The translations under genes and the position numbers were made by a program. Of a stretch of 64,000 nt of DNA, positions 5,607 to 57,179 are shown in pieces (positions within the stretch are counted from its first letter, which is position 1; every line of letters begins with the position of its first letter). The notes beneath the pieces are model-generated. The model was not told the DNA's origin, made no database searches, and worked only from the letters and a program-made list of their open reading frames with translations. The stretch lies in sequence record PV593634.1; one strand, written 5' to 3'.

Positions 5607-5630
5607 GGATAGGGGCTTCGGCTCCTATCC
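5607..5630 (+). terminator. Hairpin terminator-like element
   Basis: GGATAGGGGC-TTCG-GCTCCTATCC then TTTATG. Confidence 0.75.
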
Positions 5631-5655
5631 TTTATGTTTGTATAAGGAAAATGAA

Positions 5656-5925
5656 ATGAACGTTATCTCTTTAAACAAAGGCGAAGAAGTAGTAATCAAT
5701 GATGCATCTATCACTGAGTTCTGGCTTACTTCCATTGTGAAGGAGGACGATTCAACCATCGTGAAAGATAAACCGACCCACCCGTCAGAATTCAGTATTA
5801 AAGAGCCTCTGCGTTGTAACTATAACTACGACGGCATGACGCCTACTATTATCTTTGACGTCAATTCCCGTAAGCTGAAAGCTACCGGATACGGCTACAA
5901 GACACTCACCTTTGTATTCAACTAA
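5656..5925 (+). CDS. Hypothetical protein; local beta-rich repeat domain
   Basis: ATG 5656 after SD AAGGA (track start 5638); C-terminal IFDVNSRKLKATGYGYKTLTF pattern. Confidence 0.7.
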   Translation: MNVISLNKGEEVVINDASITEFWLTSIVKEDDSTIVKDKPTHPSEFSIKEPLRCNYNYDGMTPTIIFDVNSRKLKATGYGYKTLTFVFN

Positions 5926-5936
5926 GGACTATCGTT

Positions 5937-6257
5937 ATGATGGCGATTGAATTAAACGGTTTACTGAACACCAATTATTCCCAGAAACACATTCAGGAAT
6001 TGTTGCTTGGTAAGCCTGTGGTACGTTTGGACATTATGCGTATCGTTAAGATTGATGGTACTCACATCAACATCCCTCAAGGTGCCGTTGGGTTCAAACA
6101 AGACTCAGATGGTGTATGGCGTTCTGAAGGCGAGGTGGTACAGAAAGAAGGGAAGCCTTCCATCAAGTACCGTCTAGAATTCGACCCAGCTACCCGTGCA
6201 TATAAAGTCGACGGTGAGTATTTCGAACGTATTATCTCTCGCGTTTATATCGACTAA
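5937..6257 (+). CDS. Hypothetical protein; local beta-rich repeat domain
   Basis: SD AAGGA; C-terminal LEFDPATRAYKVDGEYFERII pattern. Confidence 0.7.
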   Translation: MMAIELNGLLNTNYSQKHIQELLLGKPVVRLDIMRIVKIDGTHINIPQGAVGFKQDSDGVWRSEGEVVQKEGKPSIKYRLEFDPATRAYKVDGEYFERIISRVYID

Positions 6258-6262
6258 ACAAA

Positions 6263-6286
6263 CTCAAATAGATATCATTGGGGTGT
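6263..6286 (+). promoter_or_regulatory. Candidate phage promoter motif (degenerate copy)
   Basis: CTCAAATAGATATCATTGGGGTGT; upstream of helicase. Confidence 0.35.
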
Positions 6287-6300
6287 AAGTTACTCACCCC
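6280..6300 (+). terminator. Hairpin terminator-like element
   Basis: GGGGTG...CACCCC then TTTATATG. Confidence 0.5.
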
Positions 6301-6401
6301 TTTATATGGAGGATTAGAAAAAGACTGCTAGGGCAATAAGTTAGACCAGTATCTTTTGGCCCCAGTAGTTACTGGATTTAATTTATGTGAGGTTAAATCA
6401 G

Positions 6402-7946
6402 ATGAGAAGAACACTAGTTGTTCATAAAGCGAGCACGTATGTTCGTCTTACTGACTTTAAGCCTGAACTCGTCCAGCAAATATTACGACCTTTTTGTGCA
6501 CGACGTTTTTATAGAGTTCAGAAGGTCCCTATACCAGGTGGTGGACCCAATGCTTTCAAAAAGGAAGTAAGCCACGTATTTGCAAGATTCAACGAAGACA
6601 GAACAGAGTTAAGGTTTAACGCCGAAGCTTTACCTGAGCTTATCAAATTCATGGAGGAAAACGGATATAGTAAGTCTCGTATCCAGATCAACGAGGAAAA
6701 GGTCATTGAGGCAGCTGATGTCAAGCTTAAGCTCAAAGATCCAAAGATAAAACCACGTAATGAAATTCAGGAAGAATACACTGAGTTCATGGGTGGACCC
6801 AAACCGTTAGTTGTTAACAACATGGGTACTGGTCAGGGTAAAACGTTTTGTGCGATCTGGACGTCTGTACAGCTCGGTAAGCGAGTGCTCATAACGGTAT
6901 TGCCAAGATATGTCGATATCTGGATTAAAGCGTTTGGTGAGTTCCTGGACATCCATCCAACGGACATTCTCGTAGCAGATACGTTCGGGGTGGAGAAACT
7001 ACACCAGACCATGAAGGATGGGTTAATTAATCCTTCTATCATTATACTACCGTTAACCAAGATCGACGTTTATATTAAACGTATGAAAGAAGATCCTGAA
7101 CTACCTGGTTTGGATGAAGTCTTTCACGATCTGAAATGTGGTGTGAGAATTATTGATGAGGCTCACGAATCGATCTATTCGGTTTACATGTCTCTGATGT
7201 TTGGTAACCATATGAAGACGATGGCTTTGTCAGCAACGCTTAAAGGCGATGACGATTTCATCAACTCCGTATATAACCAGATATTCCCACAACACTGTTA
7301 TCTACGTCCTCCCGAATATACCAAGTACATTCATGTCATTGCGTATAGTCACCGGATGGATGTTAACCGATACAGAATCAACGCAAAAGGATTCGGTGGT
7401 TATTCCCATGTTAAGTTTGAACAGGGAATAATGAAAAGCAGTCACGTCTGGGAACAGTATTACCAAATGCTCAAAGAGTCATTTAAGGTATATTACCTAG
7501 ACACTCTTCGTGACGGTCAAAAGGCCATGTGGTTCTTTGCGACGATCGAAATGTGTGACTTGTTCTTGAAGCGACTTAAGGTCGACTATCCAGATCTTGA
7601 TGCAATTGTCTTTACGGCTGAACAGTCGAGCAAGAAGGAAACGAAAACCGCTTACCGTGAGCACCAGGTCGTTATTACAACGCCAGGCTCTTGTGGTACC
7701 GGTAAAGACATTCCGAAGCTCTACATCGTGTTTAGCCCTATCTCTGTGAGTTCTTCACAGCGTAACGACCAGATGGTTGGACGTACTCGTCCGATTGACA
7801 AATGGTGGCCTGACTTGGATCCGATATTCTTGTACTACGTCTGCCCTGATATATCCAAACAGGTTGACTATCACAGGAAACGGAGACAGATCTTCGATAA
7901 GAAGATGAAGAAGTTTACTTTGATTGACAGTGGTTCTCGTATTTAA
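6402..7946 (+). CDS. SF2 DEAH-box helicase (phiKZ gp75-like, UvsW-related)
   Basis: Walker A MGTGQGKT, Walker B IIDEAH, motif III LSAT, motif V GTGKDIP, motif VI QMVGR; ATG 6402 follows SD GAGGT (track start 6387). Confidence 0.92.
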   Translation: MRRTLVVHKASTYVRLTDFKPELVQQILRPFCARRFYRVQKVPIPGGGPNAFKKEVSHVFARFNEDRTELRFNAEALPELIKFMEENGYSKSRIQINEEKVIEAADVKLKLKDPKIKPRNEIQEEYTEFMGGPKPLVVNNMGTGQGKTFCAIWTSVQLGKRVLITVLPRYVDIWIKAFGEFLDIHPTDILVADTFGVEKLHQTMKDGLINPSIIILPLTKIDVYIKRMKEDPELPGLDEVFHDLKCGVRIIDEAHESIYSVYMSLMFGNHMKTMALSATLKGDDDFINSVYNQIFPQHCYLRPPEYTKYIHVIAYSHRMDVNRYRINAKGFGGYSHVKFEQGIMKSSHVWEQYYQMLKESFKVYYLDTLRDGQKAMWFFATIEMCDLFLKRLKVDYPDLDAIVFTAEQSSKKETKTAYREHQVVITTPGSCGTGKDIPKLYIVFSPISVSSSQRNDQMVGRTRPIDKWWPDLDPIFLYYVCPDISKQVDYHRKRRQIFDKKMKKFTLIDSGSRI

Positions 7947-7949
7947 ACT

Positions 7950-7979
7950 AGACTCTGGGGGCTTCGGCTTCCAGGGTCT
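7950..7979 (+). terminator. Hairpin terminator after helicase gene
   Basis: AGACTCTGGGGGC-TTCG-GCTTCCAGGGTCT with G-T pairs. Confidence 0.7.
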
Positions 7980-7991
7980 TAATCTCTGGCG

Positions 7992-8402
7992 GTGAGCATG
8001 GAGCTAATATCCTTGAACCTGCGTTTCCCGCTTATACAGGACACGACAGTTTTGCAAGTAATAGGTGCTGGGCTAATGTACTTATTCGATAAGCACAAAA
8101 CGTTAGGCACTGATATAGATGACACCTTAATGATTGACCAAGCAAAGTTAACCATGGGTGATCATTGTAGTGATTTGATTATAACCGATGAACAGTTCGA
8201 GCTGTGTTATAACAATGCATGCGACGGTTTAAATACAGCCCTTGTATGCCACTGTGACAGCTTGAAAGCTTTAGCCGAACAGATAGACGGAGTCAGAGAT
8301 ATCTTCTCCATGGAGTATCCTGGAGTCCTTAAATTGTACGTTAAAGAAGGAGTCCCTAACTATGGAGCAGATGGAAGTCCTTTCGTTCACCTTCTCCAAT
8401 AG
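7992..8402 (+). CDS. Hypothetical protein
   Basis: ORF in tightly packed + strand run; start uncertain (7992 or 7998). Confidence 0.6.
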   Translation: MSMELISLNLRFPLIQDTTVLQVIGAGLMYLFDKHKTLGTDIDDTLMIDQAKLTMGDHCSDLIITDEQFELCYNNACDGLNTALVCHCDSLKALAEQIDGVRDIFSMEYPGVLKLYVKEGVPNYGADGSPFVHLLQ

Positions 8403-8748
8403 GAAAGTGAATTCCGCTATCTATAGTAACCAGCAATACTTGAATGAAGTGATTGTGTTCGTCCTAGGTGAAAGACTGATCTTAGGTCCCACCGACCCGT
8501 ATAGTGTCCGTGAGAACATGCACGGTTACATATCGAGTATTCTTGATCCTTTAGATCTACCAATGATCGAGGACATTGTCGACGAGCTAGAAAAGCACGT
8601 CACTGTTATATCTTCTGATACAACATACGCTGCTTTATATCTCAGTGGAGAATGTTTCCTCAAATATGAATATCAACAGTTTAACCGTTTCTGCAAACTT
8701 ATGGTCTACTGCGATCCCTATGAGTTTGCTGACCCAACCACTTTTTAA
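8362..8748 (+). CDS. Hypothetical protein
   Basis: SD AAGGAG upstream; overlaps previous gene end. Confidence 0.6.
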   Translation: MEQMEVLSFTFSNRKVNSAIYSNQQYLNEVIVFVLGERLILGPTDPYSVRENMHGYISSILDPLDLPMIEDIVDELEKHVTVISSDTTYAALYLSGECFLKYEYQQFNRFCKLMVYCDPYEFADPTTF

Positions 8749-8776
8749 TCCATTAATAAGCTACGGAGATTTTACA

Positions 8777-9337
8777 ATGTTAAACACTACTGAATCCTTG
8801 ATCCCTTCAGAAGACATGGTTACCTATAAGTTCAAAGTTCCTGGTCTGGCTGATCTGTTTGAAATGTTCTCCCCACGTCAGTCACATATCGCTCTGGAAG
8901 GCGCTCTGAACGTTATCTTCGGTCGTACCAATGCTGCGCTGCCAGTTGGTGCTCAAGTTGACGGGGACGAGTCTGAGGCTGCCCCTACAGCTGAAGATGA
9001 TGCTCTTGATCATGAGACCCAGATCGTTCAAGATGTGACCTACGCCCTGTACACCCACCAAATGGCTGACAACGCTGGAGCAGCTGCCGGTGAAGGTATT
9101 ACCACCATGTGGGTTATTCCCGAGAACTATGAGAACGAACTGGAATACCAGATGCTGGAAACTTCTTTCCGTACCATCTTCACCAAACTGTCTAATGACC
9201 TGACTGCTGATAAGTTTAATCAGGACGTTATCACTTTACATGGCGAAATGGAATTCTTCAAACGTATCGAACTGTTCAGTTATAACTATAACGTTGAACA
9301 TGAACTGTTGTCTGTTACTGTTGCAACCACTAAGTAA
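8777..9337 (+). CDS. Hypothetical acidic protein
   Basis: ATG 8777 with SD GGAG (track start 8645); strong preferred-codon bias; followed by hairpin. Confidence 0.75.
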   Translation: MLNTTESLIPSEDMVTYKFKVPGLADLFEMFSPRQSHIALEGALNVIFGRTNAALPVGAQVDGDESEAAPTAEDDALDHETQIVQDVTYALYTHQMADNAGAAAGEGITTMWVIPENYENELEYQMLETSFRTIFTKLSNDLTADKFNQDVITLHGEMEFFKRIELFSYNYNVEHELLSVTVATTK

Positions 9338-9344
9338 TAAATAC

Positions 9345-9372
9345 CCCTACTACCCTTAATTGGGTAGTAGGG
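9345..9372 (+). terminator. Hairpin terminator (CCCTAC family)
   Basis: CCCTACTACCC-TTAATT-GGGTAGTAGGG-TTTT. Confidence 0.8.
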
Positions 9373-9416
9373 TTTTAACCATTCCTATTTTTAATAAACT
9401 TACTAGGTGGCTTGAT

Positions 9417-9821
9417 ATGTTTAAGTACAATAAACCAGCACATAACGAAGCAGAAAGATCTTTCAGAGAACTTCTCACTCTTCCATGTATGAAAGACGTT
9501 AAAAAGGATTTGATACATAACCTGAAGAATATGTGTGAACATTCCAATACCGGTAACATATTTGCTAACTACTGCATCAAAGGAACTAGCAAAGTTAAAC
9601 TGGCTAGACGGGCGGTGGGGTCTAATCGGTTTGATGCTCTGCGCATCGAATTAGATACTAATCGAAAAGGCACACGTAAAGCATTCTTAATGTTAGCTGC
9701 GGATAAAGACCTTGATGGATTCCCTATAGAAATACATGTTCATTTCTGGGGTGGTATTAAGTCGGTCTACACTGTACCTAACGACAAATTAAGAGAATCT
9801 CTTATTATTGCTTTAGGTTAA
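9417..9821 (+). CDS. Hypothetical protein
   Basis: ATG 9417 after AGGTGG (track start 9360); flanked by two near-identical hairpins. Confidence 0.65.
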   Translation: MFKYNKPAHNEAERSFRELLTLPCMKDVKKDLIHNLKNMCEHSNTGNIFANYCIKGTSKVKLARRAVGSNRFDALRIELDTNRKGTRKAFLMLAADKDLDGFPIEIHVHFWGGIKSVYTVPNDKLRESLIIALG

Positions 9822-9830
9822 ATGTTAGAT

Positions 9831-9857
9831 CCCTACTACCCGTAATGGGTAGTAGGG
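9831..9857 (+). terminator. Hairpin terminator (CCCTAC family), same stem as 9345
   Basis: CCCTACTACCC-GTAAT-GGGTAGTAGGG-TTTTACTATG. Confidence 0.8.
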
Positions 9858-10075
9858 TTTTACTATGTTTTATTTATTTTCTTATTGCTTATCTTATTAT
9901 CTGTTACGGGGGAAGGGGGTTAAATCCCGGAGGGAAATTACTTATAAATATAACGGAGTGATAACGACATCTCTATTAGTTATTAGTCAGTTAGATTGTA
10001 TGTATTACAAGCTTTAATAGATACTTAGGAAAAGTATTTAATTGATCAATTAAACATTTAAACAAGGTAAATCAA

Positions 10076-10873
10076 ATGTCTTATTCTGACATCAATCACG
10101 CTTTAAATATGCTTGCTGGGTTAGAAGCGTTCTCTAATGGTTCCACTCGTTCTCCTGATGCTGTGTATGCCGCTACTGTGCTTAAGCTACATGCTCTCGA
10201 TGCAGGACATGTTGAAGGTACCGAAGGTTTCATGGACGCTGTTAAGAAGGGCGCTAAGAACGTTAAGGATTGGATCGTAGCTTTGATTAAGGCAATCAAG
10301 GAATACCTGACTAGTACTGATCGTAAGGTAGCCGAAACTCGTAAGAAAGTTTCTGACTTAGGTAAACAGATTGACACCGCTCATAAAGCGGCTAAAGCTG
10401 AAAAGAAAGAAGGTGGCGACCACGCTGCTGGTTGGAAAACTGATCCCAAGCTTGAACAATTCAGTAAGTCTATCGAAAGCATTATCAGTGACCTGGAAGG
10501 TATTGACGGTTCTAAAGCACAGCCTGTTGAGTTTACTGCCGATACATCTAAAGCCATTACTGAGCTGAAAGTGTTGCTTAAAGCTTCCGGTGAAGAAAAG
10601 TCTGATCCTTACGCATTCGCTGAAAAGATCTGCGATATCATTAAAACTATCGACGCTCAGTACACCTCTTTCTGCGCTGCTCTGAAGAAATGGGGTGATG
10701 GTAAAGATGAAAAGGAATTGGGTTCTATCAAGATGGGTCCTGATTTCCACAAAATCTCCAGTGAGTTACATGACGCTAGCCGTCGTCTGACTAAGATGTC
10801 AGAAGAAATGGTTAAACGTTGTTCTGCTGAATTGGCAGCGACTACTGGTAAGACCGAGAAGGAAGAAGAATAA
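10076..10873 (+). CDS. Putative internal head protein, paralog family (copy 1)
   Basis: N-terminal ~75 aa clearly homologous to 10873 and 18422 genes; GLEAF and GTEGF maturation-like motifs. Confidence 0.75.
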   Translation: MSYSDINHALNMLAGLEAFSNGSTRSPDAVYAATVLKLHALDAGHVEGTEGFMDAVKKGAKNVKDWIVALIKAIKEYLTSTDRKVAETRKKVSDLGKQIDTAHKAAKAEKKEGGDHAAGWKTDPKLEQFSKSIESIISDLEGIDGSKAQPVEFTADTSKAITELKVLLKASGEEKSDPYAFAEKICDIIKTIDAQYTSFCAALKKWGDGKDEKELGSIKMGPDFHKISSELHDASRRLTKMSEEMVKRCSAELAATTGKTEKEEE

Positions 10874-11652
10874 TGTCGTACTCTGATGTTGAACACTACG
10901 CAACCATTATCTCTGGATGTGAAGATCTGACATCCGGTAACGTTAAATCTCCAGATGCTGTCTATGCATTTACTGTGTTGCAATTGCACGCTGGTGATGC
11001 CGGTCTGGTAGCTGGGCAAGAAGGCTTTATGGATTCCATTAAAGCTGGTGCTAAGAATGTAAAGGAATGGATTAAGAAATTGATTCAGGCCATCCGTGAT
11101 TACTTCAAATCTAAAGAAGGTAAAGGTTCTGCTGAGCAGGTTGCTATCATTAAGAAAGTGGCCGAAGCTAAAGAAACCAAACCTACCGAAGATAAAGGTG
11201 ATACCAAAGGTGGTGAACCTAAACCAGCTGGTGAAACTAAACAGGATATGTTTAAAGCTGGATGGAAATACTTCTCCTCAGCATTCAGTCAGATTAACAT
11301 CAAACTGGGTAACTTCCCTAATGTTGGTGATGAGCTGCAGGGCATTCCTAATCCAGATGCTTTCATTAGCGAAATCGAAGACCTGAAGGAAAAGGCAGAT
11401 AACAACCCAGGTAACACAGATGGTGTTGGCGAAATCATTGACACACAGAACGCACTGAAAGCAGCCTCTGAGAAGATCACTTCTATTCTGACTGCTAAAG
11501 GTGATGCATGGCTGGCTGACGAAGCTAACAAAGATCTGGTTAAAGCTGCTGGACGTGCAAGCGTTATTTACCTTGAATGTTTCAAAGCTATTGGTAATGC
11601 ATTCGATCGTTTTGCGGCTCGCTCTGCTGAATGGCACGACAAACATAAATAA
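10873..11652 (+). CDS. Putative internal head protein, paralog family (copy 2)
   Basis: MSYSD..SPDAVYAFTVLQLHAGDAG..GQEGFMDSIKAGAKNVKEWI shared with paralogs; TAATG coupling to previous gene. Confidence 0.75.
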   Translation: MSYSDVEHYATIISGCEDLTSGNVKSPDAVYAFTVLQLHAGDAGLVAGQEGFMDSIKAGAKNVKEWIKKLIQAIRDYFKSKEGKGSAEQVAIIKKVAEAKETKPTEDKGDTKGGEPKPAGETKQDMFKAGWKYFSSAFSQINIKLGNFPNVGDELQGIPNPDAFISEIEDLKEKADNNPGNTDGVGEIIDTQNALKAASEKITSILTAKGDAWLADEANKDLVKAAGRASVIYLECFKAIGNAFDRFAARSAEWHDKHK

Positions 11653-11658
11653 CATATT

Positions 11659-11686
11659 CCCTATCCCTCCGAAAGGAGGGATAGGG
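11659..11686 (+). terminator. Hairpin terminator
   Basis: CCCTATCCCTCC-GAAA-GGAGGGATAGGG-TTT. Confidence 0.8.
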
Positions 11687-11690
11687 TTTA

Positions 11691-11724
11691 GTTGTATTTT
11701 GTTTCAAGTAGATATTATCTAAGT
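11691..11724 (+). promoter_or_regulatory. Candidate phage (early) promoter motif
   Basis: GTTGTATTTTGTTTCAAGTAGATATTATCTAAGT. Confidence 0.6.
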
Positions 11725-11764
11725 AATGTAGTTAATGTTAATTAAATTTTAGAGGAAATTAATT

Positions 11765-12385
11765 ATGGCAATTTTAGCTTTTGATATGGATAATACTTTT
11801 ACTAATACTTCCGCTAGTATTCGTGTTGAAGCTTATACTGCAGCTTATGAAGCAGGGCGTACAGATATTGTTCAGTTCTTAGTGCAAGCAAGAATGCCTG
11901 TGTGTAAGTATCCTGATTGGGTAAGTAAGTTCATATATGAGAATGTAATCATTAAACGTATTTATATGGATTTGGCTGAAGAGACTAAGTTGTTTGATGG
12001 TATTAAAGAAACCATTAAAACAGCTAAGGAATTTAGAAAGGATTTGAAAACAGTTATTTGTACACATCGTGGTAACAATACAAGCGCTTGGATGAGTAGT
12101 TATAATTGGTTAAATAAAAGGGATATGATTGAGACTGGTATGATTGATATGATTCATTCTATTAGTCATATCGAACAGAAGGATAAGATTGCTTATTTGA
12201 AAGCAATGTATCCAGGACAACCTATTTTGTTGGTTGATGATAATCCGTTAGGTTCAACAAGTACTATTCATGATCATTGTAAAGAAGTTTTGATTTATGA
12301 TGCGATTGATAAATTTGATGGTTATGTGAATCAAGATCGTTTTACTGATCATAAAGATTTGTTACAACGTGTTATTAACTTATAA
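11765..12385 (+). CDS. HAD-superfamily hydrolase, 5'(3')-deoxyribonucleotidase-like
   Basis: Motif I FDMDNT, motif II ICTHR, motif III K, motif IV LLVDDNP. Confidence 0.8.
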   Translation: MAILAFDMDNTFTNTSASIRVEAYTAAYEAGRTDIVQFLVQARMPVCKYPDWVSKFIYENVIIKRIYMDLAEETKLFDGIKETIKTAKEFRKDLKTVICTHRGNNTSAWMSSYNWLNKRDMIETGMIDMIHSISHIEQKDKIAYLKAMYPGQPILLVDDNPLGSTSTIHDHCKEVLIYDAIDKFDGYVNQDRFTDHKDLLQRVINL

Positions 12386-12395
12386 GGAATATAAA

Positions 12396-12659
12396 ATGAA
12401 ATCTTCTACTGTTATTTATGCTGTGTTCTTTGCTATTGCAATCGCTTGGATATCTTATCTGTGGACTCCTGACGATAGACCTAAAGCGTTTATTGAATCA
12501 CAAGGGTTTACTGAAGTTGAAGTTGGTACATTATCTTTCTTTGGTTGCCGTAAAGAAGTAGGTTATTCTTTTACAGCTAAGAAAGATGGTAAAGAAGTTA
12601 GTGGCGCAGTTTGTAATAGTTTCATTATCTTCGGTACTAATGTGATTCGTTTATATTAA
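12396..12659 (+). CDS. Small membrane-anchored protein
   Basis: N-terminal hydrophobic helix VIYAVFFAIAIAWISYLW; two Cys (FFGC, GAVC); SD AAGGA (track start 12369). Confidence 0.7.
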   Translation: MKSSTVIYAVFFAIAIAWISYLWTPDDRPKAFIESQGFTEVEVGTLSFFGCRKEVGYSFTAKKDGKEVSGAVCNSFIIFGTNVIRLY

Positions 12660-12666
12660 TAGAAAT

Positions 12667-12694
12667 CTCTACTATCCCATCTGGGATAGTAGAG
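12667..12694. terminator. Bidirectional hairpin terminator between convergent genes
   Basis: CTCTACTATCCC-ATCT-GGGATAGTAGAG. Confidence 0.8.
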
Positions 12695-12718
12695 TCTCTT
12701 ATGAGTTGGTTTTATTTT

Positions 12719-14020: not shown

Positions 14021-14906
14021 TTAAAGTAACCTTCTTCAGGATTTGAGAAATCTTGTATGCTTCTTCCACAGTGTTGGAGTTTTCCTCAACCAAGGAGTTG
14101 AACTGTCCTTGAATCTCAGAATCACCCATGTGAGAGATCAACATCAAAGACAACACGTTAGCTAAGTAGTTAGCCATATCGTGGTCTACGAGTTTCTGTC
14201 CCAGTTCGTTAATGAACAGGTTCATGTACGTATCGAATGACTGTCCACATCCACCACCGTTACGGATATGTAATCCAGCAAGGGTATCAAGGATAAATGG
14301 TTTGTTAGCTTTTACACGTTTAGTGACATCCGGGTCCACCCAGGTAGCATCATCTTCATCGATAATGTTTAAGCCAATCATCAGTCCACGAATAACGTTA
14401 GGGGATACTTCCTTGATATAGTAATCCATGTTTTCCATATCGTACTGAGGTTGGACCATTTTAACTACACGAATGAAACGCTCTTTAGCAGTAGCTTCTT
14501 CGTCATTTAAAGTATCCATCAAACCGATCAAATCGGTCATGCCATCAGCCATATAGATCGTGTCGAGAATGTTACACAGTTCAGGTAAAGAGTTAGGTTC
14601 AATCCAATCTTTATCTACTATGATTCCCATTATCTGCAAAGCGTCAATAATCGTATCGATAAACAAGATGCGAATATGTGCCATTAGATCTGCGGTTCCC
14701 AGAGCTTCATCGACCAACAAGTGAGTTATTGTTGAATCTATGAAAGAATCAGGGAAACTAATTGCAATTAAATTATACGCCTGGTTGTATTGTGTAGCAT
14801 GTTCAGGAGTGCATCTTGCGATAAAGTCCTGCCACATCTCACCAAGATTTTCAACGCCCAAATCTACGTTAGTAAGATCAATCATTTCTGACATAGGTTT
14901 ACCCAT
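14013..14906 (-). CDS. Conserved virion protein (phiKZ gp79-like)
   Basis: 297 aa immediately upstream of the gp80-like gene, overlapping its start; synteny only. Confidence 0.55.
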   Translation of the reverse strand: MGKPMSEMIDLTNVDLGVENLGEMWQDFIARCTPEHATQYNQAYNLIAISFPDSFIDSTITHLLVDEALGTADLMAHIRILFIDTIIDALQIMGIIVDKDWIEPNSLPELCNILDTIYMADGMTDLIGLMDTLNDEEATAKERFIRVVKMVQPQYDMENMDYYIKEVSPNVIRGLMIGLNIIDEDDATWVDPDVTKRVKANKPFILDTLAGLHIRNGGGCGQSFDTYMNLFINELGQKLVDHDMANYLANVLSLMLISHMGDSEIQGQFNSLVEENSNTVEEAYKISQILKKVTLNA

Positions 14907-14934
14907 TAATGTAATATATAAGAAGGTTCATACA

Positions 14935-15717: not shown

Positions 15718-15750
15718 TCCCCCTCCACTCCTAATTAGGAAAAATGTATC

Positions 15751-17358: not shown

Positions 17359-17399
17359 CGGAAGATCATAATCTTAATAAACGCTCTGTTGAGCGAGCT

Positions 17400-18349: not shown

Positions 18350-18356
18350 TACCCCC

Positions 18357-18384
18357 TCCCGTCCCTCCGAAAGGAAGGGCGGGA
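18357..18384 (+). terminator. Hairpin terminator-like element
   Basis: TCCCGTCCCTCC-GAAA-GGAAGGGCGGGA then TGTTATG. Confidence 0.7.
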
Positions 18385-18421
18385 TGTTATGCAATACACT
18401 ATTAACTTTAAGGAAATTAAA

Positions 18422-19216: not shown

Positions 19217-19224
19217 TAACAATT

Positions 19225-19250
19225 CCCTACCTTCCGAAAGGAGGGTAGGG
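19225..19250 (+). terminator. Hairpin terminator
   Basis: CCCTACCTTCC-GAAA-GGAGGGTAGGG-TTTATG. Confidence 0.8.
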
Positions 19251-19270
19251 TTTATGTTTGTCTATAACAA

Positions 19271-19294
19271 TTCAGATAGATATTATTATGGTGT
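19271..19294 (+). promoter_or_regulatory. Candidate phage (early) promoter motif
   Basis: TTCAGATAGATATTATTATGGTGT. Confidence 0.6.
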
Positions 19295-19820: not shown

Positions 19821-20240
19821 ATGAACAAGTTACAAGAATTCCTGAAAGATGTGCGCGAGAACCCGGATTCTTTTAAAGGTCTCCATTACCCAACTCTGTT
19901 GAAAGCGATTAAGGATATCGAAAACCAATCCCTTAAGCACAAGCTCTCAGAGAACTGGTTCCTAGATCAGCAGTACAGTCCTAAGTACTTGCTTAATGTC
20001 ATGGAACTTCAACTGCCTGGGTTTAAAGATACCTGCGGACCTAAACTAATCCCAGCTGCTGTATTCGATATCGATAAACGCAGTTCCCTCGTTGAACGTC
20101 TTCAGTTGGCTATTCATGCTAGCGCTAACCGTTCAGTGCAACTCGGCATCCGTGTTAAGTACCGTGGACACTCTCGTTATGTATTCTACCCATGTGGAAC
20201 TAACGAAGTAATGGAACGTCTGAAATTTATCTTCCGATAA
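19821..20240 (+). CDS. Hypothetical protein
   Basis: Follows previous gene by 2 nt; ends before a hairpin. Confidence 0.65.
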   Translation: MNKLQEFLKDVRENPDSFKGLHYPTLLKAIKDIENQSLKHKLSENWFLDQQYSPKYLLNVMELQLPGFKDTCGPKLIPAAVFDIDKRSSLVERLQLAIHASANRSVQLGIRVKYRGHSRYVFYPCGTNEVMERLKFIFR

Positions 20241-20248
20241 ACATAAAC

Positions 20249-20277
20249 CCCTACCCCTCCTTTCGGAGTGGGTAGGG
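20249..20277. terminator. Bidirectional hairpin terminator between convergent genes
   Basis: CCCTACCCCTCC-TTTC-GGAGTGGGTAGGG. Confidence 0.75.
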
Positions 20278-26167: not shown

Positions 26168-26177
26168 ACAAACATAT

Positions 26178-26207
26178 CCCCTACCCCTCCGAAAGGAAGG
26201 GTAGGGG
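26178..26207. terminator. Bidirectional hairpin terminator between convergent genes
   Basis: CCCCTACCCCTCC-GAAA-GGAAGGGTAGGGG. Confidence 0.75.
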
Positions 26208-26213
26208 GTTATG

Positions 26214-36378: not shown

Positions 36379-36408
36379 AAGGGTAGAGGGCTTCGGCTCT
36401 CTATCCTT
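36379..36408 (+). terminator. Hairpin terminator after inner-body gene
   Basis: AAGGGTAGAGGGC-TTCG-GCTCTCTATCCTT then ATGTATG. Confidence 0.75.
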
Positions 36409-36457
36409 ATGTATGTCCGTTTGTAGAATACTTTGATCTTACAGAGGAGTTATTCTA

Positions 36458-40396: not shown

Positions 40397-40424
40397 CCCC
40401 TACTCCTTTAACAGGGAGTAGGGG
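40397..40424 (+). terminator. Hairpin terminator
   Basis: CCCCTACTCCTT-TAAC-AGGGAGTAGGGG-TTT. Confidence 0.75.
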
Positions 40425-40458
40425 TTTGATTTTATGATTGTTCAAGAGGGGATTAATT

Positions 40459-43953: not shown

Positions 43954-45302
43954 TGTTAAATGCTCGTATACAGGCGCTTCTACGTCAAGCCTCTTCTACA
44001 GCTAAGTACGCTAAGAACGCAGCAGAGTCAGTTCAGATACAAGCTATCTTTATAACACCAGAAGGACAGTACCGAGCACTAGGTTGTTTAGGTATGGTAG
44101 AGATAGCTGACTTTGCTAATAAGGATAACCACTCGGAGATGATTCAGATTACCTGCCGTTTCCAGCCGGGTATCTATTTCAACAAGATCGTTCCATTCCG
44201 AGATGATCTAAAGGTACAGCTTATCGTAGCCACAGGAAGTGATAAACTGTTAAGGGAGTTCGTTGGCGTTCCTTTAGTCTCTAAGGACGTTAAGGCTGAA
44301 GGAAATAACACAGGGGCTCTGAACTTAGAAGCTCTTGATGTCACCAACCTGGTTGAGTATAAGTTCCAGCTTATCGATCCTGGATATGCCAAACTGAAGA
44401 ACGTTCCAGTTTCTAACATTTATCAGATGACTAACATAGAAGGTGTTATCGGTACAGTAATGCAGAAGTATACTGAAGCTGTGGGTATGACAGGATCAAC
44501 CTTATTTAAAGGGCTGCAGTTCCACAGACCTATCGATAATACCAACATGTTTGACTCTGTTGAAATTCCAAACGGAACTAAACTGGTTGACGTCCCAACG
44601 ATGCTTCAGAACGATAACGACTATGGTGTCTATACTAAAGGGTTAACTTGTTTCTACAAACAAAACTACTGGTGGGTTGTTCCTATCTTTAATACTGAGC
44701 TTGTGGATACACATCCTAGACCTCTTGAGATCGTTCGTGTGCCTGAAAACAAGATACCTGACCTAGATGTCAGTTATTACCGTTCAGACGTTGCTATGAC
44801 AATTATAGCGTGCGGTAGAGGTGATCATACAGATAACGCAGATATTGACAAACAGAACGATGGTGTTGGTCAGCGTATACTGTTAGGTGAGGCTGTGGCT
44901 GGCGATACAGGTTATCACTATCAGAAAGGTCGCGCTATTACTACCCGTGCAGATACCTTGCAGGAGTATAAGTTAAGCGACCGACGTTCCGGTGAGGAAT
45001 GGGTTCCACTAAACCCTAACCCTACCGGTAACCTTTGCGTACCTATGACACAGAACGCCATTAACGAAGGCGAGATCATTGAAGTAGAATGGCGTAACGG
45101 AGATACAGGTTATTTAGAACCGGGTCACCCACTTCACTATCAGTACATGTACGATGAAACAGAGATGATTGTGAGGAAAGGGGTGTTGTTAGGATATCGT
45201 ACAGATTACATTCCTATTAACGCAATGCCCAACCCAATTCTGAAACGCACAACTATTTTAAAGATATTCGTTAAGCGCCGTGAACAATTTAAAGTAGCAT
45301 AA
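43953..45302 (+). CDS. Baseplate hub-like protein (phiKZ gp101-like)
   Basis: 449 aa beta-rich; synteny; WRNGDTGYLEPG near C-terminus typical of hub proteins. Confidence 0.65.
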   Translation: MLNARIQALLRQASSTAKYAKNAAESVQIQAIFITPEGQYRALGCLGMVEIADFANKDNHSEMIQITCRFQPGIYFNKIVPFRDDLKVQLIVATGSDKLLREFVGVPLVSKDVKAEGNNTGALNLEALDVTNLVEYKFQLIDPGYAKLKNVPVSNIYQMTNIEGVIGTVMQKYTEAVGMTGSTLFKGLQFHRPIDNTNMFDSVEIPNGTKLVDVPTMLQNDNDYGVYTKGLTCFYKQNYWWVVPIFNTELVDTHPRPLEIVRVPENKIPDLDVSYYRSDVAMTIIACGRGDHTDNADIDKQNDGVGQRILLGEAVAGDTGYHYQKGRAITTRADTLQEYKLSDRRSGEEWVPLNPNPTGNLCVPMTQNAINEGEIIEVEWRNGDTGYLEPGHPLHYQYMYDETEMIVRKGVLLGYRTDYIPINAMPNPILKRTTILKIFVKRREQFKVA

Positions 45303-45306
45303 ACAT

Positions 45307-45340
45307 AACTCCTACCCCTCCGTCAGGAAGGGTAGGAGTT
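45307..45340. terminator. Bidirectional hairpin terminator between convergent genes
   Basis: AACTCCTACCCCTCC-GTCA-GGAAGGGTAGGAGTT. Confidence 0.75.
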
Positions 45341-45353
45341 TAACTACTTATGT

Positions 45354-47511: not shown

Positions 47512-47530
47512 AGATAGCTACTATCTTATG
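47512..47530 (+). promoter_or_regulatory. Candidate late promoter of major capsid gene (small hairpin + TATG)
   Basis: AGATAG-CTA-CTATCT immediately followed by TATG, ~70 nt upstream of capsid ATG; TATG is the reported phiKZ late-promoter consensus. Confidence 0.45.
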
Positions 47531-47601
47531 CGTAAAAATATTAACTACCGCGAACAAATATATTTGTTTTCAAAGAAAGACTCATTTAAAAGGTATTTAT
47601 C

Positions 47602-49802: not shown

Positions 49803-49835
49803 CCTCCTACCCTGGGCATAGCCTGGGGTAGGGGG
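49803..49835 (+). terminator. Terminator after major capsid gene
   Basis: CCTCCTACCCTGGGC-ATA-GCCTGGGGTAGGGGG-TTTTT. Confidence 0.8.
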
Positions 49836-49868
49836 TTTTTGCTGTTCATTTCACTTTCGCTAATTATT

Positions 49869-49892
49869 TTTAAACAGATATTATCTAAGGGT
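49869..49892 (+). promoter_or_regulatory. Candidate phage (early) promoter motif
   Basis: TTTAAACAGATATTATCTAAGGGT; heads the operon containing nvRNAP beta-N. Confidence 0.6.
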
Positions 49893-51031: not shown

Positions 51032-52723
51032 ATGGATCCGCAACTGCTTAAAAAGATTCGTGAAGAACGCGGAGGCTTCACGCAAGCTTTAGTTGAAGGT
51101 TGGCATAAGAAGGATATGGATAAGATCATTCCGCATCTAACGAAGTGCTTTGAGAACATGTTCAGGTCCTTACGGGAAAAGGGCTATTACTTTGATGGTA
51201 TTGAAGAGGTTTGCCCTCTGGAGTTCTATAACTCAATTACTCGTTCAAGTAGTAGTGGGACCAAAGACTTCGAGATTGCCAAGAACAGTTTCTTTGGGGT
51301 TCGTATGCTGAACCACTATAAGGATCCTGAGACAGGCATCGAGTCAGAACTGAAATGCCCTCTGATGTTCTTGCCATATACAAACATATATGGTGACGTC
51401 TTTGCACGTAACTCCACTTATTCCATGCAGTTGGTTATGTCGGAACGTGGACCATGTGTAGATGGCGGTCGTGATAAATCGATCTTTATCCGTGTGCTGG
51501 GATATAAGTTCAAAGTAACAAAGGAAATCCACACGTTCAACCGAGTATTCAGAACCGGTAACAATGTGCAGACAGGTGCCATTAACATGACGCTTCCTGC
51601 CAACCGTTTCTATAACTCCAAGAATGATCGTAAGATAACCAGTAAGAAGGTTCCAATCCCATTACTGGCGTGGTACGTATTTGGTAAGTACGGATTCACA
51701 CACTGCATGAAACAATTTGCCGAATGTGAATACATGATCGATACCTTAGATACGTTACTGGATATCTGCCCTGAGTCAGAAGGTTGGGAGATCTATTCTA
51801 ACACTGGCCAGATCCATCCTAAAGCGTTTGACCGACCAAAGGGTGCTCCTGTATTGGATGATCCTGCAATCGCTGTTAAGAGCGCTAATAAAGGTGGTGA
51901 GATCTCCAACCTCGGTTTGCAGTATGTTGGTGGACTGTTGTTTATGTTCGGTGTGTTCAGTCACGAACTGGATATCCGTAGACTGGATGACATTAACTAT
52001 TGGCGTTGGATCATTGGCAGATGTTCTATTCGCTTACCATCCCATACAAATCCAGATGTGTATCTTCGTCAGATGAACGAACACTTCAGCTCCGTTGAAG
52101 AGTACGCTGACGATATTACCATCGACAAGTATAACAAGTTCGATATTGAAGTACGTGATACGTATGAATTGTTGAACTACCTGATGATGAACTATTCGTC
52201 TCTGATCAAGTTGTACGATCCTGCGAACATGCTCCACAAAGAGCTTGCTTCCATGGAATTCATCGTAGACTTCCTGATTCACCAGGCGAATGAATTCAAA
52301 TTCATGGTCCGTAATAAAAGCAATATCACTCCGAAGATTATCAACAGAGAACTCGATGCGCACTTCCGCCTGTTCAACGCTGATAAAACGGTATTGCAAA
52401 ATAATACAATCCTCGAACAAACCGGTACAGATAACCCATTCGTCGACTACGGCTTAGGTGTTATCCATCAGACCAAGTCCACCGTTAACCGGGGACCTGG
52501 GAAGAAGAAGGAAGAGTTCGATCCAAACCATCCGGGTAGCATCATACATGCTTCACAGCCCTTCGTAGGCTCATATCAGTTTTCTACGAAACCTAACCCG
52601 GATGCTCGAGGCTTCTTACAGCCACGTGTTCATTTGGAGCAGGATAAGTATACTGCATTGAGACCGGAGGACAGGGAGTTGTATGAGGCGACCATGCATC
52701 GTCTTAAATTTAGAGAAAGATAA
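51032..52723 (+). CDS. rpoB: Non-virion RNA polymerase beta subunit, N-terminal part (phiKZ gp123-like)
   Basis: 563 aa; LFLPY...STYSMQLV beta region A/B similarity; C-terminal HASQP..KPNPDARG; synteny. Confidence 0.8.
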   Translation: MDPQLLKKIREERGGFTQALVEGWHKKDMDKIIPHLTKCFENMFRSLREKGYYFDGIEEVCPLEFYNSITRSSSSGTKDFEIAKNSFFGVRMLNHYKDPETGIESELKCPLMFLPYTNIYGDVFARNSTYSMQLVMSERGPCVDGGRDKSIFIRVLGYKFKVTKEIHTFNRVFRTGNNVQTGAINMTLPANRFYNSKNDRKITSKKVPIPLLAWYVFGKYGFTHCMKQFAECEYMIDTLDTLLDICPESEGWEIYSNTGQIHPKAFDRPKGAPVLDDPAIAVKSANKGGEISNLGLQYVGGLLFMFGVFSHELDIRRLDDINYWRWIIGRCSIRLPSHTNPDVYLRQMNEHFSSVEEYADDITIDKYNKFDIEVRDTYELLNYLMMNYSSLIKLYDPANMLHKELASMEFIVDFLIHQANEFKFMVRNKSNITPKIINRELDAHFRLFNADKTVLQNNTILEQTGTDNPFVDYGLGVIHQTKSTVNRGPGKKKEEFDPNHPGSIIHASQPFVGSYQFSTKPNPDARGFLQPRVHLEQDKYTALRPEDRELYEATMHRLKFRER

Positions 52724-55165: not shown

Positions 55166-55191
55166 GGGGACTGGGCTTAGGCTCAGTCTCC
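55166..55191 (+). terminator. Hairpin terminator
   Basis: GGGGACTGGGC-TTAG-GCTCAGTCTCC then pyrimidine tract. Confidence 0.7.
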
Positions 55192-55366: not shown

Positions 55367-55795
55367 ATGAAAACTTTCACTACTTCTATCTACGTTCCGC
55401 ATACCGCTAAAGCTGATATGACTAACAGCGACGTTGAACAAATGTCTTACAGTTTGGACAAAGCTGTTTCATTGCCTTTAGATATCGGTCATGGTGGTCT
55501 GGATGATATTAAGTTAGGTGAAGAGTTCATTCTTAAAGTGAATGGAACGCACGAACGCCACGAAATTAAAATGCGCGGTATTCATGGTGGTGTTGGTAAG
55601 ATCAAGTTTATGTTCGTAGAACCTTCTGATCCAGCAGTACATCGCTTTGCGGAATGGCGTATTAAGAAGATCAACCTGATGAGTATGAAGGATGGTTCCG
55701 AATTACAACTGCGCGATTTCGGACCTACACAACTGCGTCGTTTGATGCGCCATGCAATCGCTAAAGGTGAGCGTAACCTGGTAACTTATCGTTAA
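55367..55795 (+). CDS. Hypothetical (putative early) protein
   Basis: SD AAGGA; downstream of promoter-like motif. Confidence 0.7.
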   Translation: MKTFTTSIYVPHTAKADMTNSDVEQMSYSLDKAVSLPLDIGHGGLDDIKLGEEFILKVNGTHERHEIKMRGIHGGVGKIKFMFVEPSDPAVHRFAEWRIKKINLMSMKDGSELQLRDFGPTQLRRLMRHAIAKGERNLVTYR

Positions 55796-55809
55796 TAAGG
55801 AATAGACAA

Positions 55810-56385
55810 ATGAATACCCCTAATAACAAGCCAGTAATTGGAGTGTTGTTTAACGATCCGGCTAAACCAATTGGCGAAGCGGTTACTTATGTGGATACCA
55901 GTGGCAACCAACATCATTCTAAACCTTTGATGGAAATCGATTTACCAGAACTCAGAATGTTCAAATTGCTAAACGGTGACATGAAAGTTATCAATGAAAG
56001 CTATTGGGACGAGTACGAAGAACAGTCACAGGGTATGGATGACCTGGAACACAATACCATTATTAGTATAGCTAATATCAACATTAAAGGTTACATTGAA
56101 ATTCTGTCTATGGAGTTCATACAGGAGTTCATGAAAACCTTACCTTACGATAGACGCATTACAGATGTCGACCAAGCGATACTCGATAAACGAATTGAGC
56201 TATCGAACATTCTTGATGAGCTATTTAAAGAACATAAAAACCTTGTAGGTTATGGGCATAATGGCCACGAGGAAGCAATGGAGTTACAGGACCGTTATTG
56301 GAAATACTTCCGCGGTTGGATGAAGTCGTTATTAAGATGGAAATACCAGTCAATTGGATTCGATCCAGATGTTTGGTGTAAGTAA
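55810..56385 (+). CDS. Hypothetical protein
   Basis: SD AAGGA; 191 aa. Confidence 0.7.
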   Translation: MNTPNNKPVIGVLFNDPAKPIGEAVTYVDTSGNQHHSKPLMEIDLPELRMFKLLNGDMKVINESYWDEYEEQSQGMDDLEHNTIISIANINIKGYIEILSMEFIQEFMKTLPYDRRITDVDQAILDKRIELSNILDELFKEHKNLVGYGHNGHEEAMELQDRYWKYFRGWMKSLLRWKYQSIGFDPDVWCK

Positions 56386-56401
56386 TTAGCAGTTAGATTT
56401 C

Positions 56402-56438
56402 AGTTGTATTCTTTTTCAGACATATATAATTTAAGTGT
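56402..56438 (+). promoter_or_regulatory. Candidate phage (early) promoter motif
   Basis: AGTTGTATTCTTTTTCAGACATATATAATTTAAGTGT. Confidence 0.5.
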
Positions 56439-56492
56439 AAATACATACAGTATTACATTAACCTAACCAATCTACTTAGAAGGAAATATATC

Positions 56493-57143
56493 ATGACTAC
56501 TACCACTAAAGCTAAAGCAAACGAAACCACTATCGCTCTGAACAACGAAGCTGTTGAAGCAATCATCGAAGGTCAGGCGACTGTTGTAGCAGTAGAAGAA
56601 AAGAATGAATTCGAAGCAATGATGGAAGCTCCGCTGGAACCAGTCGAGCAAACAACCGAAACTGAAGAGGGTATCAAAATGAACGCAGATCAGAAAATCA
56701 AAGCAGCACAGGCAGCACTGAAAAACATTAATGAAGAACAAGCACAAGCTGGTTTCAGCTGGGCTGCAGTAGTAACTTCTTCAGCAGTAACTGGCATCAT
56801 CGTCGGTGCTCGTATGGCAACTCGTAACATGATCATCGCTGATACTGAAGTAGTTGGTGAGCAAGATACTCTGAAGCCTTACAGCGGTGTAGAAATCGCA
56901 GCACGTATGGCTGGCGCTATGTTGGTATCTGGTGGTATCAATGCCGGTCTGCAGAAAGCATCCAAGTTCGTATCTGGTAACCAGTACAACCTGTTCACTG
57001 CAACAAGTGCTGTAGCTCATGGTACTGCTCTGGTTGATACCCTGTTCGGTGATAGCCTGGTAGAAATGGTTGGTGGGGTGGTAGCTGGTAAAGCTGAAGA
57101 AGCAGAAGTAGCTGAAACTCAGTTCATTGAAGACGAAGCATAA
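56493..57143 (+). CDS. Putative membrane-associated early protein
   Basis: Acidic ends; Gly/Ala-rich hydrophobic segments; SD AAGGA; promoter-like motif upstream. Confidence 0.7.
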   Translation: MTTTTKAKANETTIALNNEAVEAIIEGQATVVAVEEKNEFEAMMEAPLEPVEQTTETEEGIKMNADQKIKAAQAALKNINEEQAQAGFSWAAVVTSSAVTGIIVGARMATRNMIIADTEVVGEQDTLKPYSGVEIAARMAGAMLVSGGINAGLQKASKFVSGNQYNLFTATSAVAHGTALVDTLFGDSLVEMVGGVVAGKAEEAEVAETQFIEDEA

Positions 57144-57149
57144 TAGTAA

Positions 57150-57179
57150 CCTCCTACTCACCTAAGGGTGAGTAGGAGG
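57150..57179. terminator. Bidirectional hairpin terminator between convergent genes
   Basis: CCTCCTACTCACC-TAAG-GGTGAGTAGGAGG. Confidence 0.8.

Follow-up and report, generated by a model that had tools for sequence, protein, structure and literature searches.

The intergenic hairpins of the Shewanella jumbo phage SXP01 are probably intrinsic-type terminators of the kind found in phage phiKZ, and the TATG that accompanies many of them would be part of the terminator tail and not a hairpin-dependent promoter. The proposed mechanism is as follows. At 0-20 nt past the stop codon the RNA would fold into a GC-rich stem-loop, whose core is often CCCTAC..GTAGGG and whose tetraloop is often GAAA, UUCG or UUUC; a U-rich tail would follow, the preferred form being UUAUGUUUGU. 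The G of the tail, 5-7 nt past the stem, would fall at about the expected release point, and one palindromic hairpin would halt transcripts arriving from both sides of a convergent gene pair. RNA 3' ends would then be expected at these SXP01 tails, and the A and G of the tail presumably matter to the phage polymerases.

The phage and its hairpins

The window, a stretch of 64,000 nucleotides, is the segment 62001-126000 of PV593634.1, the sequence of SXP01, which is a relative of the phages OBP and N1M2. SXP01 has two phiKZ-type RNA polymerases. Subunits of both the virion and the non-virion enzyme (vRNAP and nvRNAP) are annotated and the virion polymerase is multisubunit. One gene of the window, listed in Table 1 as context and lying outside the hairpin family, encodes a homologue of phiKZ gp123, the nvRNAP subunit that binds the promoter TATG (PMC12809450). 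The annotation of SXP01 is sparse, with 193 CDS in 270 kb, and junctions and tails were counted using a codon-usage gene model; every result has the same direction under an earlier, cruder model. Enrichment counts refer to the whole 269,939-bp genome. Relatives of SXP01 are present in public reads, as Logan contigs with DNA about 97% identical.

The family of about 17 hairpins that had been described in the window is present in full; the stems measure 8-15 bp and dG ranges from -11 to -28 kcal/mol. The positions given for TATG on the plus strand, or CATA marking it on the minus strand, are exact in 18 of 18 cases, and the claim that every convergent junction of the window carries a hairpin holds at five out of five. 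Genome-wide, hairpins occur at 17 of 18 convergent junctions, 43 of 238 tandem junctions and none of the 19 divergent ones, and the distance from stop codon to hairpin is mostly 0-20 nt. The stem-loops are GC-rich, the 5' arm being rich in C and the 3' arm in G. CCTAC..GTAGG is present in 25 of 62 cores across the genome and the loops, mostly of 4 nt, are most commonly GAAA, TTCG and TTTC. This composition, the location 3' of genes with two-way use at convergent pairs, and the possession by the phage of phiKZ-type virion and non-virion multisubunit polymerases are all properties of phiKZ-type terminators. In an independent consensus scan the family hairpins are the top-ranked terminator-like sites in 5000-24999; sigma-70-type promoters show no enrichment in the consensus scan, with 40 against 41.8 expected.

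In one-way hairpins, 38 G·U pairs are found in the sense fold and three in the antisense fold, and 25 hairpins are more stable in the sense fold compared to four in the antisense (p=1.4e-5). This shows that the sense RNA fold is under selection. Since G·U pairs are almost confined to the sense RNA, we conclude that the hairpins act as RNA.

Table 1. Putative terminator hairpins and associated features of the window (coordinates are those of the window; a dot marks sites given no single strand).
Feature	Position	Strand	Remarks
Terminator hairpin, tail TTTATGTTTGT	5607..5643 (stem-loop 5607-5630)	+	UUCG loop; tandem junction, stop codon 4 nt upstream
Weaker hairpin, dG -11, tail CTTTATATG	6279..6308	+	
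Terminator hairpin past helicase gene	7951..7978	+	UUCG loop; tail without TATG
Terminator hairpin, tail TTTTAACC	9345..9372	+	N1M2 orthologue has tail TATATG
Terminator hairpin, tail TTTTACTATG	9831..9867	+	TATG at 9864; missing at the orthologous N1M2 junction
Hairpin 11659-11686, plus tail TTTAGTTG	11643..11696	.	GAAA loop; TATG tails on minus side
Convergent-junction hairpin, plus tail TCTCTTATG	12667..12703	.	Kept in N1M2 as TCTGTTATG
Terminator hairpin, tail ATGTTATG	18358..18391	+	N1M2 orthologue has GTTTTATGTTGT, then a separate early-type promoter
Terminator hairpin, tail TTTATGTTTGT	19225..19286	+	Followed by early-type promoter core AGATATTAT at 19278-19286
Convergent-junction hairpin 20249-20277	20238..20277	.	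Minus-side tail GTTTATGTTT closes DNA polymerase gene
Two-way terminator 26178-26207	26168..26213	.	TATG tail on each strand; both kept in N1M2
Terminator hairpin, tail TTATGTATGT	36381..36420	+	Upstream of virion protein gene; tail and leader kept in N1M2
Hairpin with TATG (40433) 9 nt later	40397..40436	+	Virion protein gene 26 nt on; kept in N1M2
Convergent-junction hairpin 45311-45336, minus tail AGTTATGTTTATG	45298..45352	.	Plus-side TATG 11 nt out
Capsid gene leader	47512..47580	+	Mini-hairpin 47512-47526, TATG 47527-47530
Capsid gene terminator, strongest hairpin (dG -27.6)	49803..49884	+	Classical TTTTTG tail without TATG
gp123 homologue gene (phiKZ nvRNAP beta-like subunit)	51032..52723	+	E 8e-17, full length
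Terminator hairpin	55166..55191	+	Tail without TATG
Convergent-junction hairpin 57150-57179	57136..57203	.	Minus side is portal gene end, TATG 7 nt out; T-rich block TTATTTATTTTT follows on plus side

TATG and the terminator tail

Of the 78 terminator-oriented hairpin sides in the whole genome, 29 have a TATG starting no more than 5 nt past the last G-C pair. The check proposed with the original prediction, for enrichment of TATG near hairpins, gave a clear answer, the intergenic background being 3.8% (binomial p about 2e-21). Under the earlier gene model there are 25 TATG tails, compared to a mean of 3.5 and a maximum of 11 in 2000 composition-matched tail shuffles. The frequency depends on what the side faces: 18 of 32 for terminator-facing sides at convergent junctions and 11 of 46 at tandem junctions (Fisher p=0.005), with five of 46 for sides that face no gene end. 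At convergent gene pairs a CATA upstream and a TATG downstream of the same hairpin occur together because each strand has its own TTATG tail. At 11643-11696 there are TATG tails on the minus side though no minus-strand gene ends there; this side might provide the minus-strand operon 12719-14906 with a back-up stop.

The word itself is scarce in the genome, with 1877 occurrences observed against 2687 expected by composition. Within genes, a synonymous-codon shuffle gave a sense-strand ratio of 0.86 (z -9.6), yet TATG ranks only 15th of 256 tetranucleotides and the signal of avoidance is too weak to use. The density in divergent promoter regions, 0.0057 per position compared to 0.0050 in all intergenic DNA, is uninformative.

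The tail consensus extends beyond these four letters to T-TATG-TTT-(G/T)-T, written TTATGTTTGT. Allowing one optional extra Y, the pattern YTTATKYYGT is present on 10 of 78 terminator-facing sides and none of 46 other sides. The tail G lies at +5 to +7 past the stem in 24 of the 29 TATG tails. The idea that TATG often replaces a U-tract did not survive, the word being placed within a U-rich tract. The classical U-tract rule, at least five T in 8 nt beginning 0-2 nt past the stem, describes 21 of 29 TATG tails, 20 of 39 other terminator-facing tails and 18 of 38 non-terminator sides. A nearby TATG is missing from about half of the terminator-facing sides and the tail of the capsid gene terminator is a plain UUUUUG in all eight phages compared; for these reasons TATG is considered preferred, not required, in the terminator tail.

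Two other explanations of the tail were tried and rejected. The mirrored CATAA is not an in-frame back-up stop codon, as the frames (8/9/6) carry no bias. Nor does TTATG merely lengthen the stem by pairing with a CATAA on its upstream side, since it is unpaired at four tandem sites judged by eye (8680 and 55945 in genome coordinates, 5607 and 19225 in the window). At convergent sites the pairing of TTATG with CATAA is true by construction.

Conservation and comparison with phiKZ

N1M2 and phages of six further genera keep the hairpin at orthologous junctions, with compensated changes in the stem, and often keep TTATG. The 45311-45336 junction has a hairpin in eight of eight phages with stem sequences that are unrelated. 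The N1M2 counterpart of the hairpin at 40397 is placed about 215 nt from the preceding stop codon. The capsid gene terminator is retained in eight phages with compensatory stem changes, which were read from the plain sequences, the MAFFT/RNAalifold alignment being one column out of register in some rows. An early-type promoter core follows this terminator at 49876-49884.

In phiKZ, 61 terminators identified by ONT-cappable-seq and predicted to be intrinsic share a hairpin and the motif YTTATKYYGT (Putzeys et al. 2024, PMC10914365). Motif A of the 201phi2-1 terminators is similar, and eight terminators of that phage were tested by terminator trap (PMC11512511). Both phages, like SXP01, have two multisubunit RNA polymerases of their own. 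The common pattern is a C-rich/G-rich stem-loop followed by a TTAT(G/T)-pyrimidine-GT tail, placed past genes and two-way where these converge; in phiKZ DNA such tails are also seen on both sides of convergent junctions. This homology of motif supports one of the alternatives originally put forward, that TTTATG is a termination signal for phage RNA polymerase. There are differences. The SXP01 stems are longer and usually contain a TA step (CCCTAC..GTAGGG) where phiKZ has CCYCCCC, and the tail is one T longer. Classical bacterial Rho-independent terminators also combine a GC-rich hairpin with a U-rich tract behind it, and have bidirectional forms at convergent genes, but in SXP01 the tail has a fixed A and G (UUAUG) instead of a plain U run. 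Conservation of the UUAUG tail across phage genera on different hosts points to phage polymerases and not to a host enzyme. The tails of phage AR9 have the form TTTAT-T, with TATG in none of 12. The AR9 nvRNAP reads another promoter than TATG.

Starting and stopping at TATG

Does the hairpin also make a promoter? The original prediction was of fused terminator/late-promoter units: TATG late promoters would gain the specificity they lack from the hairpin, whether as DNA or nascent RNA, in the style of phage N4. The tight spacing of TATG from the stems is in keeping with this, the four letters and the polymerase family are the same as for phiKZ late promoters, and the specificity of the latter beyond TATG is unexplained (PMC4666361, PMC12809450). 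The distribution of the hairpins is against it. They are absent from all 19 divergent junctions, though late genes there need promoters too, and TATG tails peak at convergent junctions, which lack a downstream gene and where a start would yield antisense RNA only. The G·U asymmetry, moreover, reflects selection on the fold of sense RNA. A phiKZ-type late promoter has TATG before a co-directional late gene and hairpin-free DNA upstream, whereas the SXP01 tails have a GC-rich stem at about -4 to -30. Neither the validated phiKZ promoter P119L nor the region before phiKZ gene 83, to which P83-1L/2L have been mapped, shows a GC-rich hairpin; in both the upstream DNA is AT-rich, as it is in the conserved capsid leader. 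The promoter hairpins of N4 combine stems of 5-7 bp with 3-nt loops, and a single-subunit virion polymerase recognises them as DNA. SXP01 is similar in having a hairpin beside the supposed start site and in being a phage that injects its own polymerase, but stems of 8-15 bp, mostly 4-nt loops and a multisubunit virion enzyme are unlike N4. We consider a hairpin-dependent promoter very unlikely. The small hairpin with TATG described before the capsid gene was correctly placed in SXP01, but the hairpin is not conserved in seven relatives. In contrast, the TATG is identical in eight phages, the leader downstream is almost identical and the DNA upstream is AT-rich with no conserved hairpin. This TATG is likely a late promoter and start, and is the best late-promoter candidate.

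The stem-loops could instead be mainly sites of RNA 3'-end protection or processing, blocking exonucleases or attracting endonucleases while the polymerase reads through. Selection on the sense RNA fold would be compatible with such a role, and 3'-end mapping as carried out in phiKZ cannot alone separate termination from processing. We judge this unlikely given that a U-rich tail directly past the stem is a signature of termination, that a terminator-trap assay was applied to eight related 201phi2-1 terminators (PMC11512511) and that a two-way design at convergent genes suits collision avoidance. Another proposal, that the hairpins derive from a small repeat able to move or recombine, REP- or MITE-like, and have no transcriptional role of their own, is brought to mind by the 29-mer of hairpin 20249-20277, which recurs unchanged at three further loci and in N1M2; in related phages the assemblies are broken at the 20249 copy and continue into the flank of another. 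Placement strictly past stop codons, tails that depend on orientation, and conservation of position between genera despite differing, co-varying stems make this extremely improbable.

The preferred reading, termination with TATG as part of the tail, leaves room for a second use of the word. At tandem junctions before middle or late genes the tail TATG might also be a start for nvRNAP, giving a promoter-coupled terminator in which the hairpin is unneeded for recognition. The core of the phiKZ late promoter is TATG with G as +1 (Yakunina 2015, PMC4666361) and is read by gp123, which has its homologue in SXP01. At 5607, 36381, 40397 and genome position 257052 the next start codon is 20-50 nt past the TATG with no other promoter word between, and 36381-36420 is among the best candidates for such dual use. 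The same layout occurs between the phiKZ late head genes 95 and 96. In N1M2, two of the orthologous junctions have an explicit early promoter in that place. In bacteria overlapping terminators and promoters are reported to be common (Fletcher et al. 2026, bioRxiv preprint 10.64898/2026.08.19.745784). These promoter-coupled terminators match the concept behind the original prediction, in that a termination sequence also contributes to the promoter that follows, and no more than 35 bp separate the 3' end from the start. However, they are sigma-70 systems whose -35 element is supplied by stem DNA, and their enrichment is between tandem genes, the opposite of the convergent enrichment of TATG tails noted above. 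In several cases a separate early-type promoter comes next after the TATG tail. The region -4 to -30 would also be a GC-rich stem where P119L and the capsid leader are AT-rich, and ease of strand separation has been suggested to add to promoter specificity (PMC12809450). Dual use is thus possible but rather doubtful.

With similar reserve we suggest that the pocket in the nvRNAP beta-lobe (the gp123 homologue) which recognises the promoter TATG might also read the tail TATG, on the non-template strand, causing a sequence-specific pause and, together with the hairpin, RNA release. The hints are the tail G at +5 to +7 past the stem, a tail common to phiKZ and OBP-like phages on different hosts with TATG absent from the 12 AR9 tails, and the lower frequency of TATG tails in the first terminators past early-type promoters (four of 18 compared to 25 of 50 others, p=0.054). 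If true, one four-letter word would both start and stop a phage polymerase, possibly with instant restart at tandem late genes.

Overall the sequence evidence favours a termination role for the hairpins over a hairpin-dependent promoter. The phiKZ terminator motif would now extend to the OBP/N1M2/SXP01 group, with enteric and Shewanella hosts, and the hairpins offer a map of transcription-unit ends for the poorly annotated SXP01. We found no paper that discusses the overlap between terminator tail and promoter TATG. The point of wider interest is that a conserved terminator tail holds the very word that nvRNAP reads as a promoter. If this overlap is functional, whether in pausing and release or in terminating and restarting, it would bear on how sigma-less polymerases choose their sites.

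Gene junctions and hairpins in SXP01

The window corresponds exactly to bases 62001-126000 of the record for Shewanella phage SXP01 (PV593634.1), whose capsid gene it matches at 100% identity. SXP01 is a jumbo phage with a genome of 269,939 bp, related to Klebsiella phage N1M2, Serratia phage Yubaba, Pseudomonas phage OBP and others (capsid gene identity 77-85%). Its record annotates virion and non-virion multisubunit RNA polymerase subunits, and the product of 51032-52723 is homologous over its full length to phiKZ gp123 (E 8e-17). The GenBank record holds just 193 CDS across 270 kb and unannotated ORFs with good codon usage are numerous (e.g. 5937-6257, 19258-19818 and 19821-20240); relying solely on the record would therefore give wrong junction classes. 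The classes used here come from a crude codon-usage gene model, two versions of which gave the same direction in every test. On the sense strand of coding regions AAAA and TTTT are strongly avoided relative to synonymous shuffles (ratios 0.44 and 0.31); Shine-Dalgarno-like GAGG and GGAG are strongly avoided there too (0.47-0.67). Over 17501-23500, relatives about 95-99% identical occur in public runs, among them metagenomes from gut, invertebrates and wastewater as well as several small runs that carry single-organism labels, one relative having a 307-nt insertion at 19818/19820.

Hairpins were sought with RNAfold in 44-nt windows over the whole genome, used beyond the window for statistical power, and each stem was taken to end at its outermost two stacked G-C pairs. 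The 17 hairpins originally predicted in the window are real, and all 18 TATG or CATA positions given with the prediction are exact. In an independent consensus scan no terminator-like sites within 5000-24999 rank above the family hairpins, and sigma-70-type promoters show no enrichment (40 against 41.8 expected).

Hairpins and TATG tails by class of junction and of hairpin side
Class	n	Hairpin present	TATG start within 5 nt past stem
Convergent junctions	18	17	
Tandem junctions	238	43	
Divergent junctions	19	0	
Convergent sides facing gene end	32		18
Tandem sides facing gene end	46		11
Sides facing no gene end	46		5
Intergenic background			TATG 3.8%

It is as sense-direction RNA that the hairpins act. 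Across 34 one-way (tandem) hairpins, G·U pairs number 38 in the sense-strand fold and three in the antisense fold, and the sense fold is the stabler in 25 and the less stable in four (Wilcoxon p=1.4e-5). An identical 29-nt hairpin (20249-20277), one-base bulge included, recurs at three or four SXP01 junctions (genome 9304, 221332, 269885) and at the orthologous N1M2 junction (L009 18550). Public assemblies of related phages break at this hairpin, joined to the flank of another copy. The recurrence and the breaks point to terminators exchanging sequence, or to selection on the sequence that is very strong.

TATG tails and a probable phiKZ-type terminator

TATG is enriched near the hairpins when all gene-end sides are set against intergenic background (binomial p ~2e-21). 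Composition-matched shuffling of tails, under an earlier gene model, gives a mean of 3.5 and a maximum of 11 TATG tails against the 25 observed. TATG is under-represented across the genome overall, making the enrichment more striking, and the tails are commoner on convergent than on tandem gene-end sides (Fisher p=0.005). The pattern of hairpin plus TATG is real and highly non-random. Tails aligned on TATG have the longer consensus T-TATG-T-T-T-(G/T)-T; TATGTTTG has 39 copies where about 13 would be expected, some 17 of them, counted by eye, directly following a stem. In 24 of 29 cases the tail G lies 5-7 nt past the final G-C pair of the stem. TATG was originally thought often to replace a U-tract. 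Its place beside the stems stands, replacement does not: the tails average 6.9 T within the first 12 nt and 21/29 pass the classical U-tract rule, so TATG is embedded in the U-tract.

Terminators of phiKZ have been located by ONT-cappable-seq (Putzeys et al. 2024, PMC10914365). Among them, 61 with an intrinsic prediction have in common a stem-loop and, next to it, a TTAT region; their consensus closes with ...GGB-YTTATKYYGT. The 201phi2-1 motif strongly resembles it and eight terminators were tested in a terminator trap (PMC11512511). Downstream of phiKZ capsid gene 120 is a GC hairpin, then TTTATGTTGT. Over 80 kb of phiKZ, 22 hairpin sides face a gene end and 14 of them have TATG within 5 nt; at three convergent junctions this holds on either side. 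In N1M2 the fraction is 9/11. The phiKZ terminators and the SXP01 family appear to be the same element, differing in a slightly altered stem core (CCCTAC..GTAGGG) and one additional T in the SXP01 tail. We consider it likely that the SXP01 elements are intrinsic terminators of the phiKZ type, whose conserved tail contains TTATG.

The hairpin is kept at 11 of 12 orthologous N1M2 junctions, with stems altered but still pairing, and TTATG is often kept there too (12667, 18358, 20249, both sides of 26178, 36381, 40397). The convergent junction of the virion-protein and helicase genes has a hairpin in 8/8 phages with largely unrelated stems, and the capsid terminator exchanges CCTAC/GTAGG for CCTTC/GAAGG across phages and has two alternative inner stems. 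TATG tails have been gained or lost between relatives at 5607, 9345 and 45311: the tail is favoured, not obligatory.

The hairpin at 11659, although at a tandem junction, carries a full TATGTTATTTATGTTTGT tail on its minus-strand side (11643-11658), overlapping the end of the upstream gene. The minus-strand operon 12719-14906 has no TATG on its own terminator side, and transcripts reading through from it may meet a back-up stop in the 11659 tail. At several convergent junctions the hairpin is followed, 10-12 nt on, by the T-rich block TTATTTATTTT(T) (57192-57203; genome 9343, 12326, 172881). The block shares bases with the minus-strand gene's stop codon (portal, terminase and others), which gives such genes Lys/Asn-rich ends and stacked stops. 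It also precedes early-type promoters at tandem junctions.

Promoter readings and the capsid leader

Do the hairpins supply late-promoter specificity, as the original prediction mainly proposed? Late genes start at divergent junctions, yet none of these has a hairpin, and TATG tails peak at convergent junctions, where starts would yield only antisense RNA. The DNA upstream of phiKZ late promoter P119L, on which all the biochemistry and structures were done, is AT-rich and lacks a hairpin; the same holds upstream of phiKZ gene 83, the mapped location of P83-1L/2L. A recent open-complex structure led to the suggestion that ease of strand separation is the source of the promoter's remaining specificity (PMC12809450); a GC-rich stem at -4 to -30 would resist melting, which would count against a promoter there. 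Several TATG tails have a separate AGATATTAT-type promoter 20-30 nt further on, e.g. at 19278, the type predicted as the early promoter of N1M2 and OBP (PMC7058600). A hairpin-dependent promoter is thus not supported, whereas the alternative originally offered, TTTATG as a termination signal for the phage polymerase, is supported by the match to the phiKZ motif (PMC10914365).

The best late-promoter candidate, on sequence grounds, is the TATG at 47527, which with its downstream leader is identical or nearly so in eight phages of several genera. The mini-hairpin just upstream, predicted to accompany it, is peculiar to SXP01 among the eight phages compared. The leader (47520-47601) begins at this invariant TATG and is almost identical in the eight, though capsid coding sequences are only 77-85% identical. 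Within the leader, TTTTC follows a perfect AT-rich palindrome, AACAAATA/TATTTGTT, and the two could form a leader hairpin or attenuator; in 201phi2-1, terminators are reported just downstream of capsid promoters (PMC11512511). The motif cAGATATTATcTAnGTGTA, usually preceded by a T-rich stretch, occurs at 11710, 19278, 49876 and 55316, with 13 exact plus-strand copies genome-wide. It matches the early promoter predicted for N1M2 and OBP, itself the counterpart of phiKZ TATATTAC. The copy after the capsid terminator is conserved in eight phages, upstream of a gene pair ending with the gp123 homologue.

Overlap of start and stop words

The phiKZ non-virion polymerase (nvRNAP) requires TATG and initiates at its G (PMC4666361), and its beta-like subunit gp123 reads TATG on the non-template strand (PMC12809450). 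Might the tail TATG also serve as a start at some tandem sites? It is the only promoter-like word ahead of the next gene at 5607, 36381, 40397 and genome 257052, and at two of these junctions N1M2 has an explicit early promoter instead. The phiKZ late head genes 95/96 have the same layout between them, and overlapping terminators and promoters are newly reported to be common in bacteria (preprint 10.64898/2026.08.19.745784). Those bacterial overlaps favour tandem genes, whereas SXP01 TATG tails peak at convergent junctions, and we regard such dual use as unlikely. A further reading, similarly doubtful, is that the elongating nvRNAP recognises TATG in the tail as a signal to pause or release. 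The hints are the fixed register of the tail G past the stem, a tail common to phages of different hosts, the absence of TATG tails (0/12) from AR9, whose promoter rule differs, though its genome is very AT-rich and the sample small, and the lower share of TATG tails where a terminator is the first to follow an early-type promoter (4/18 against 25/50, p=0.054); they are not decisive. The one thread worth an experiment is that the phage polymerase's start and stop words overlap.
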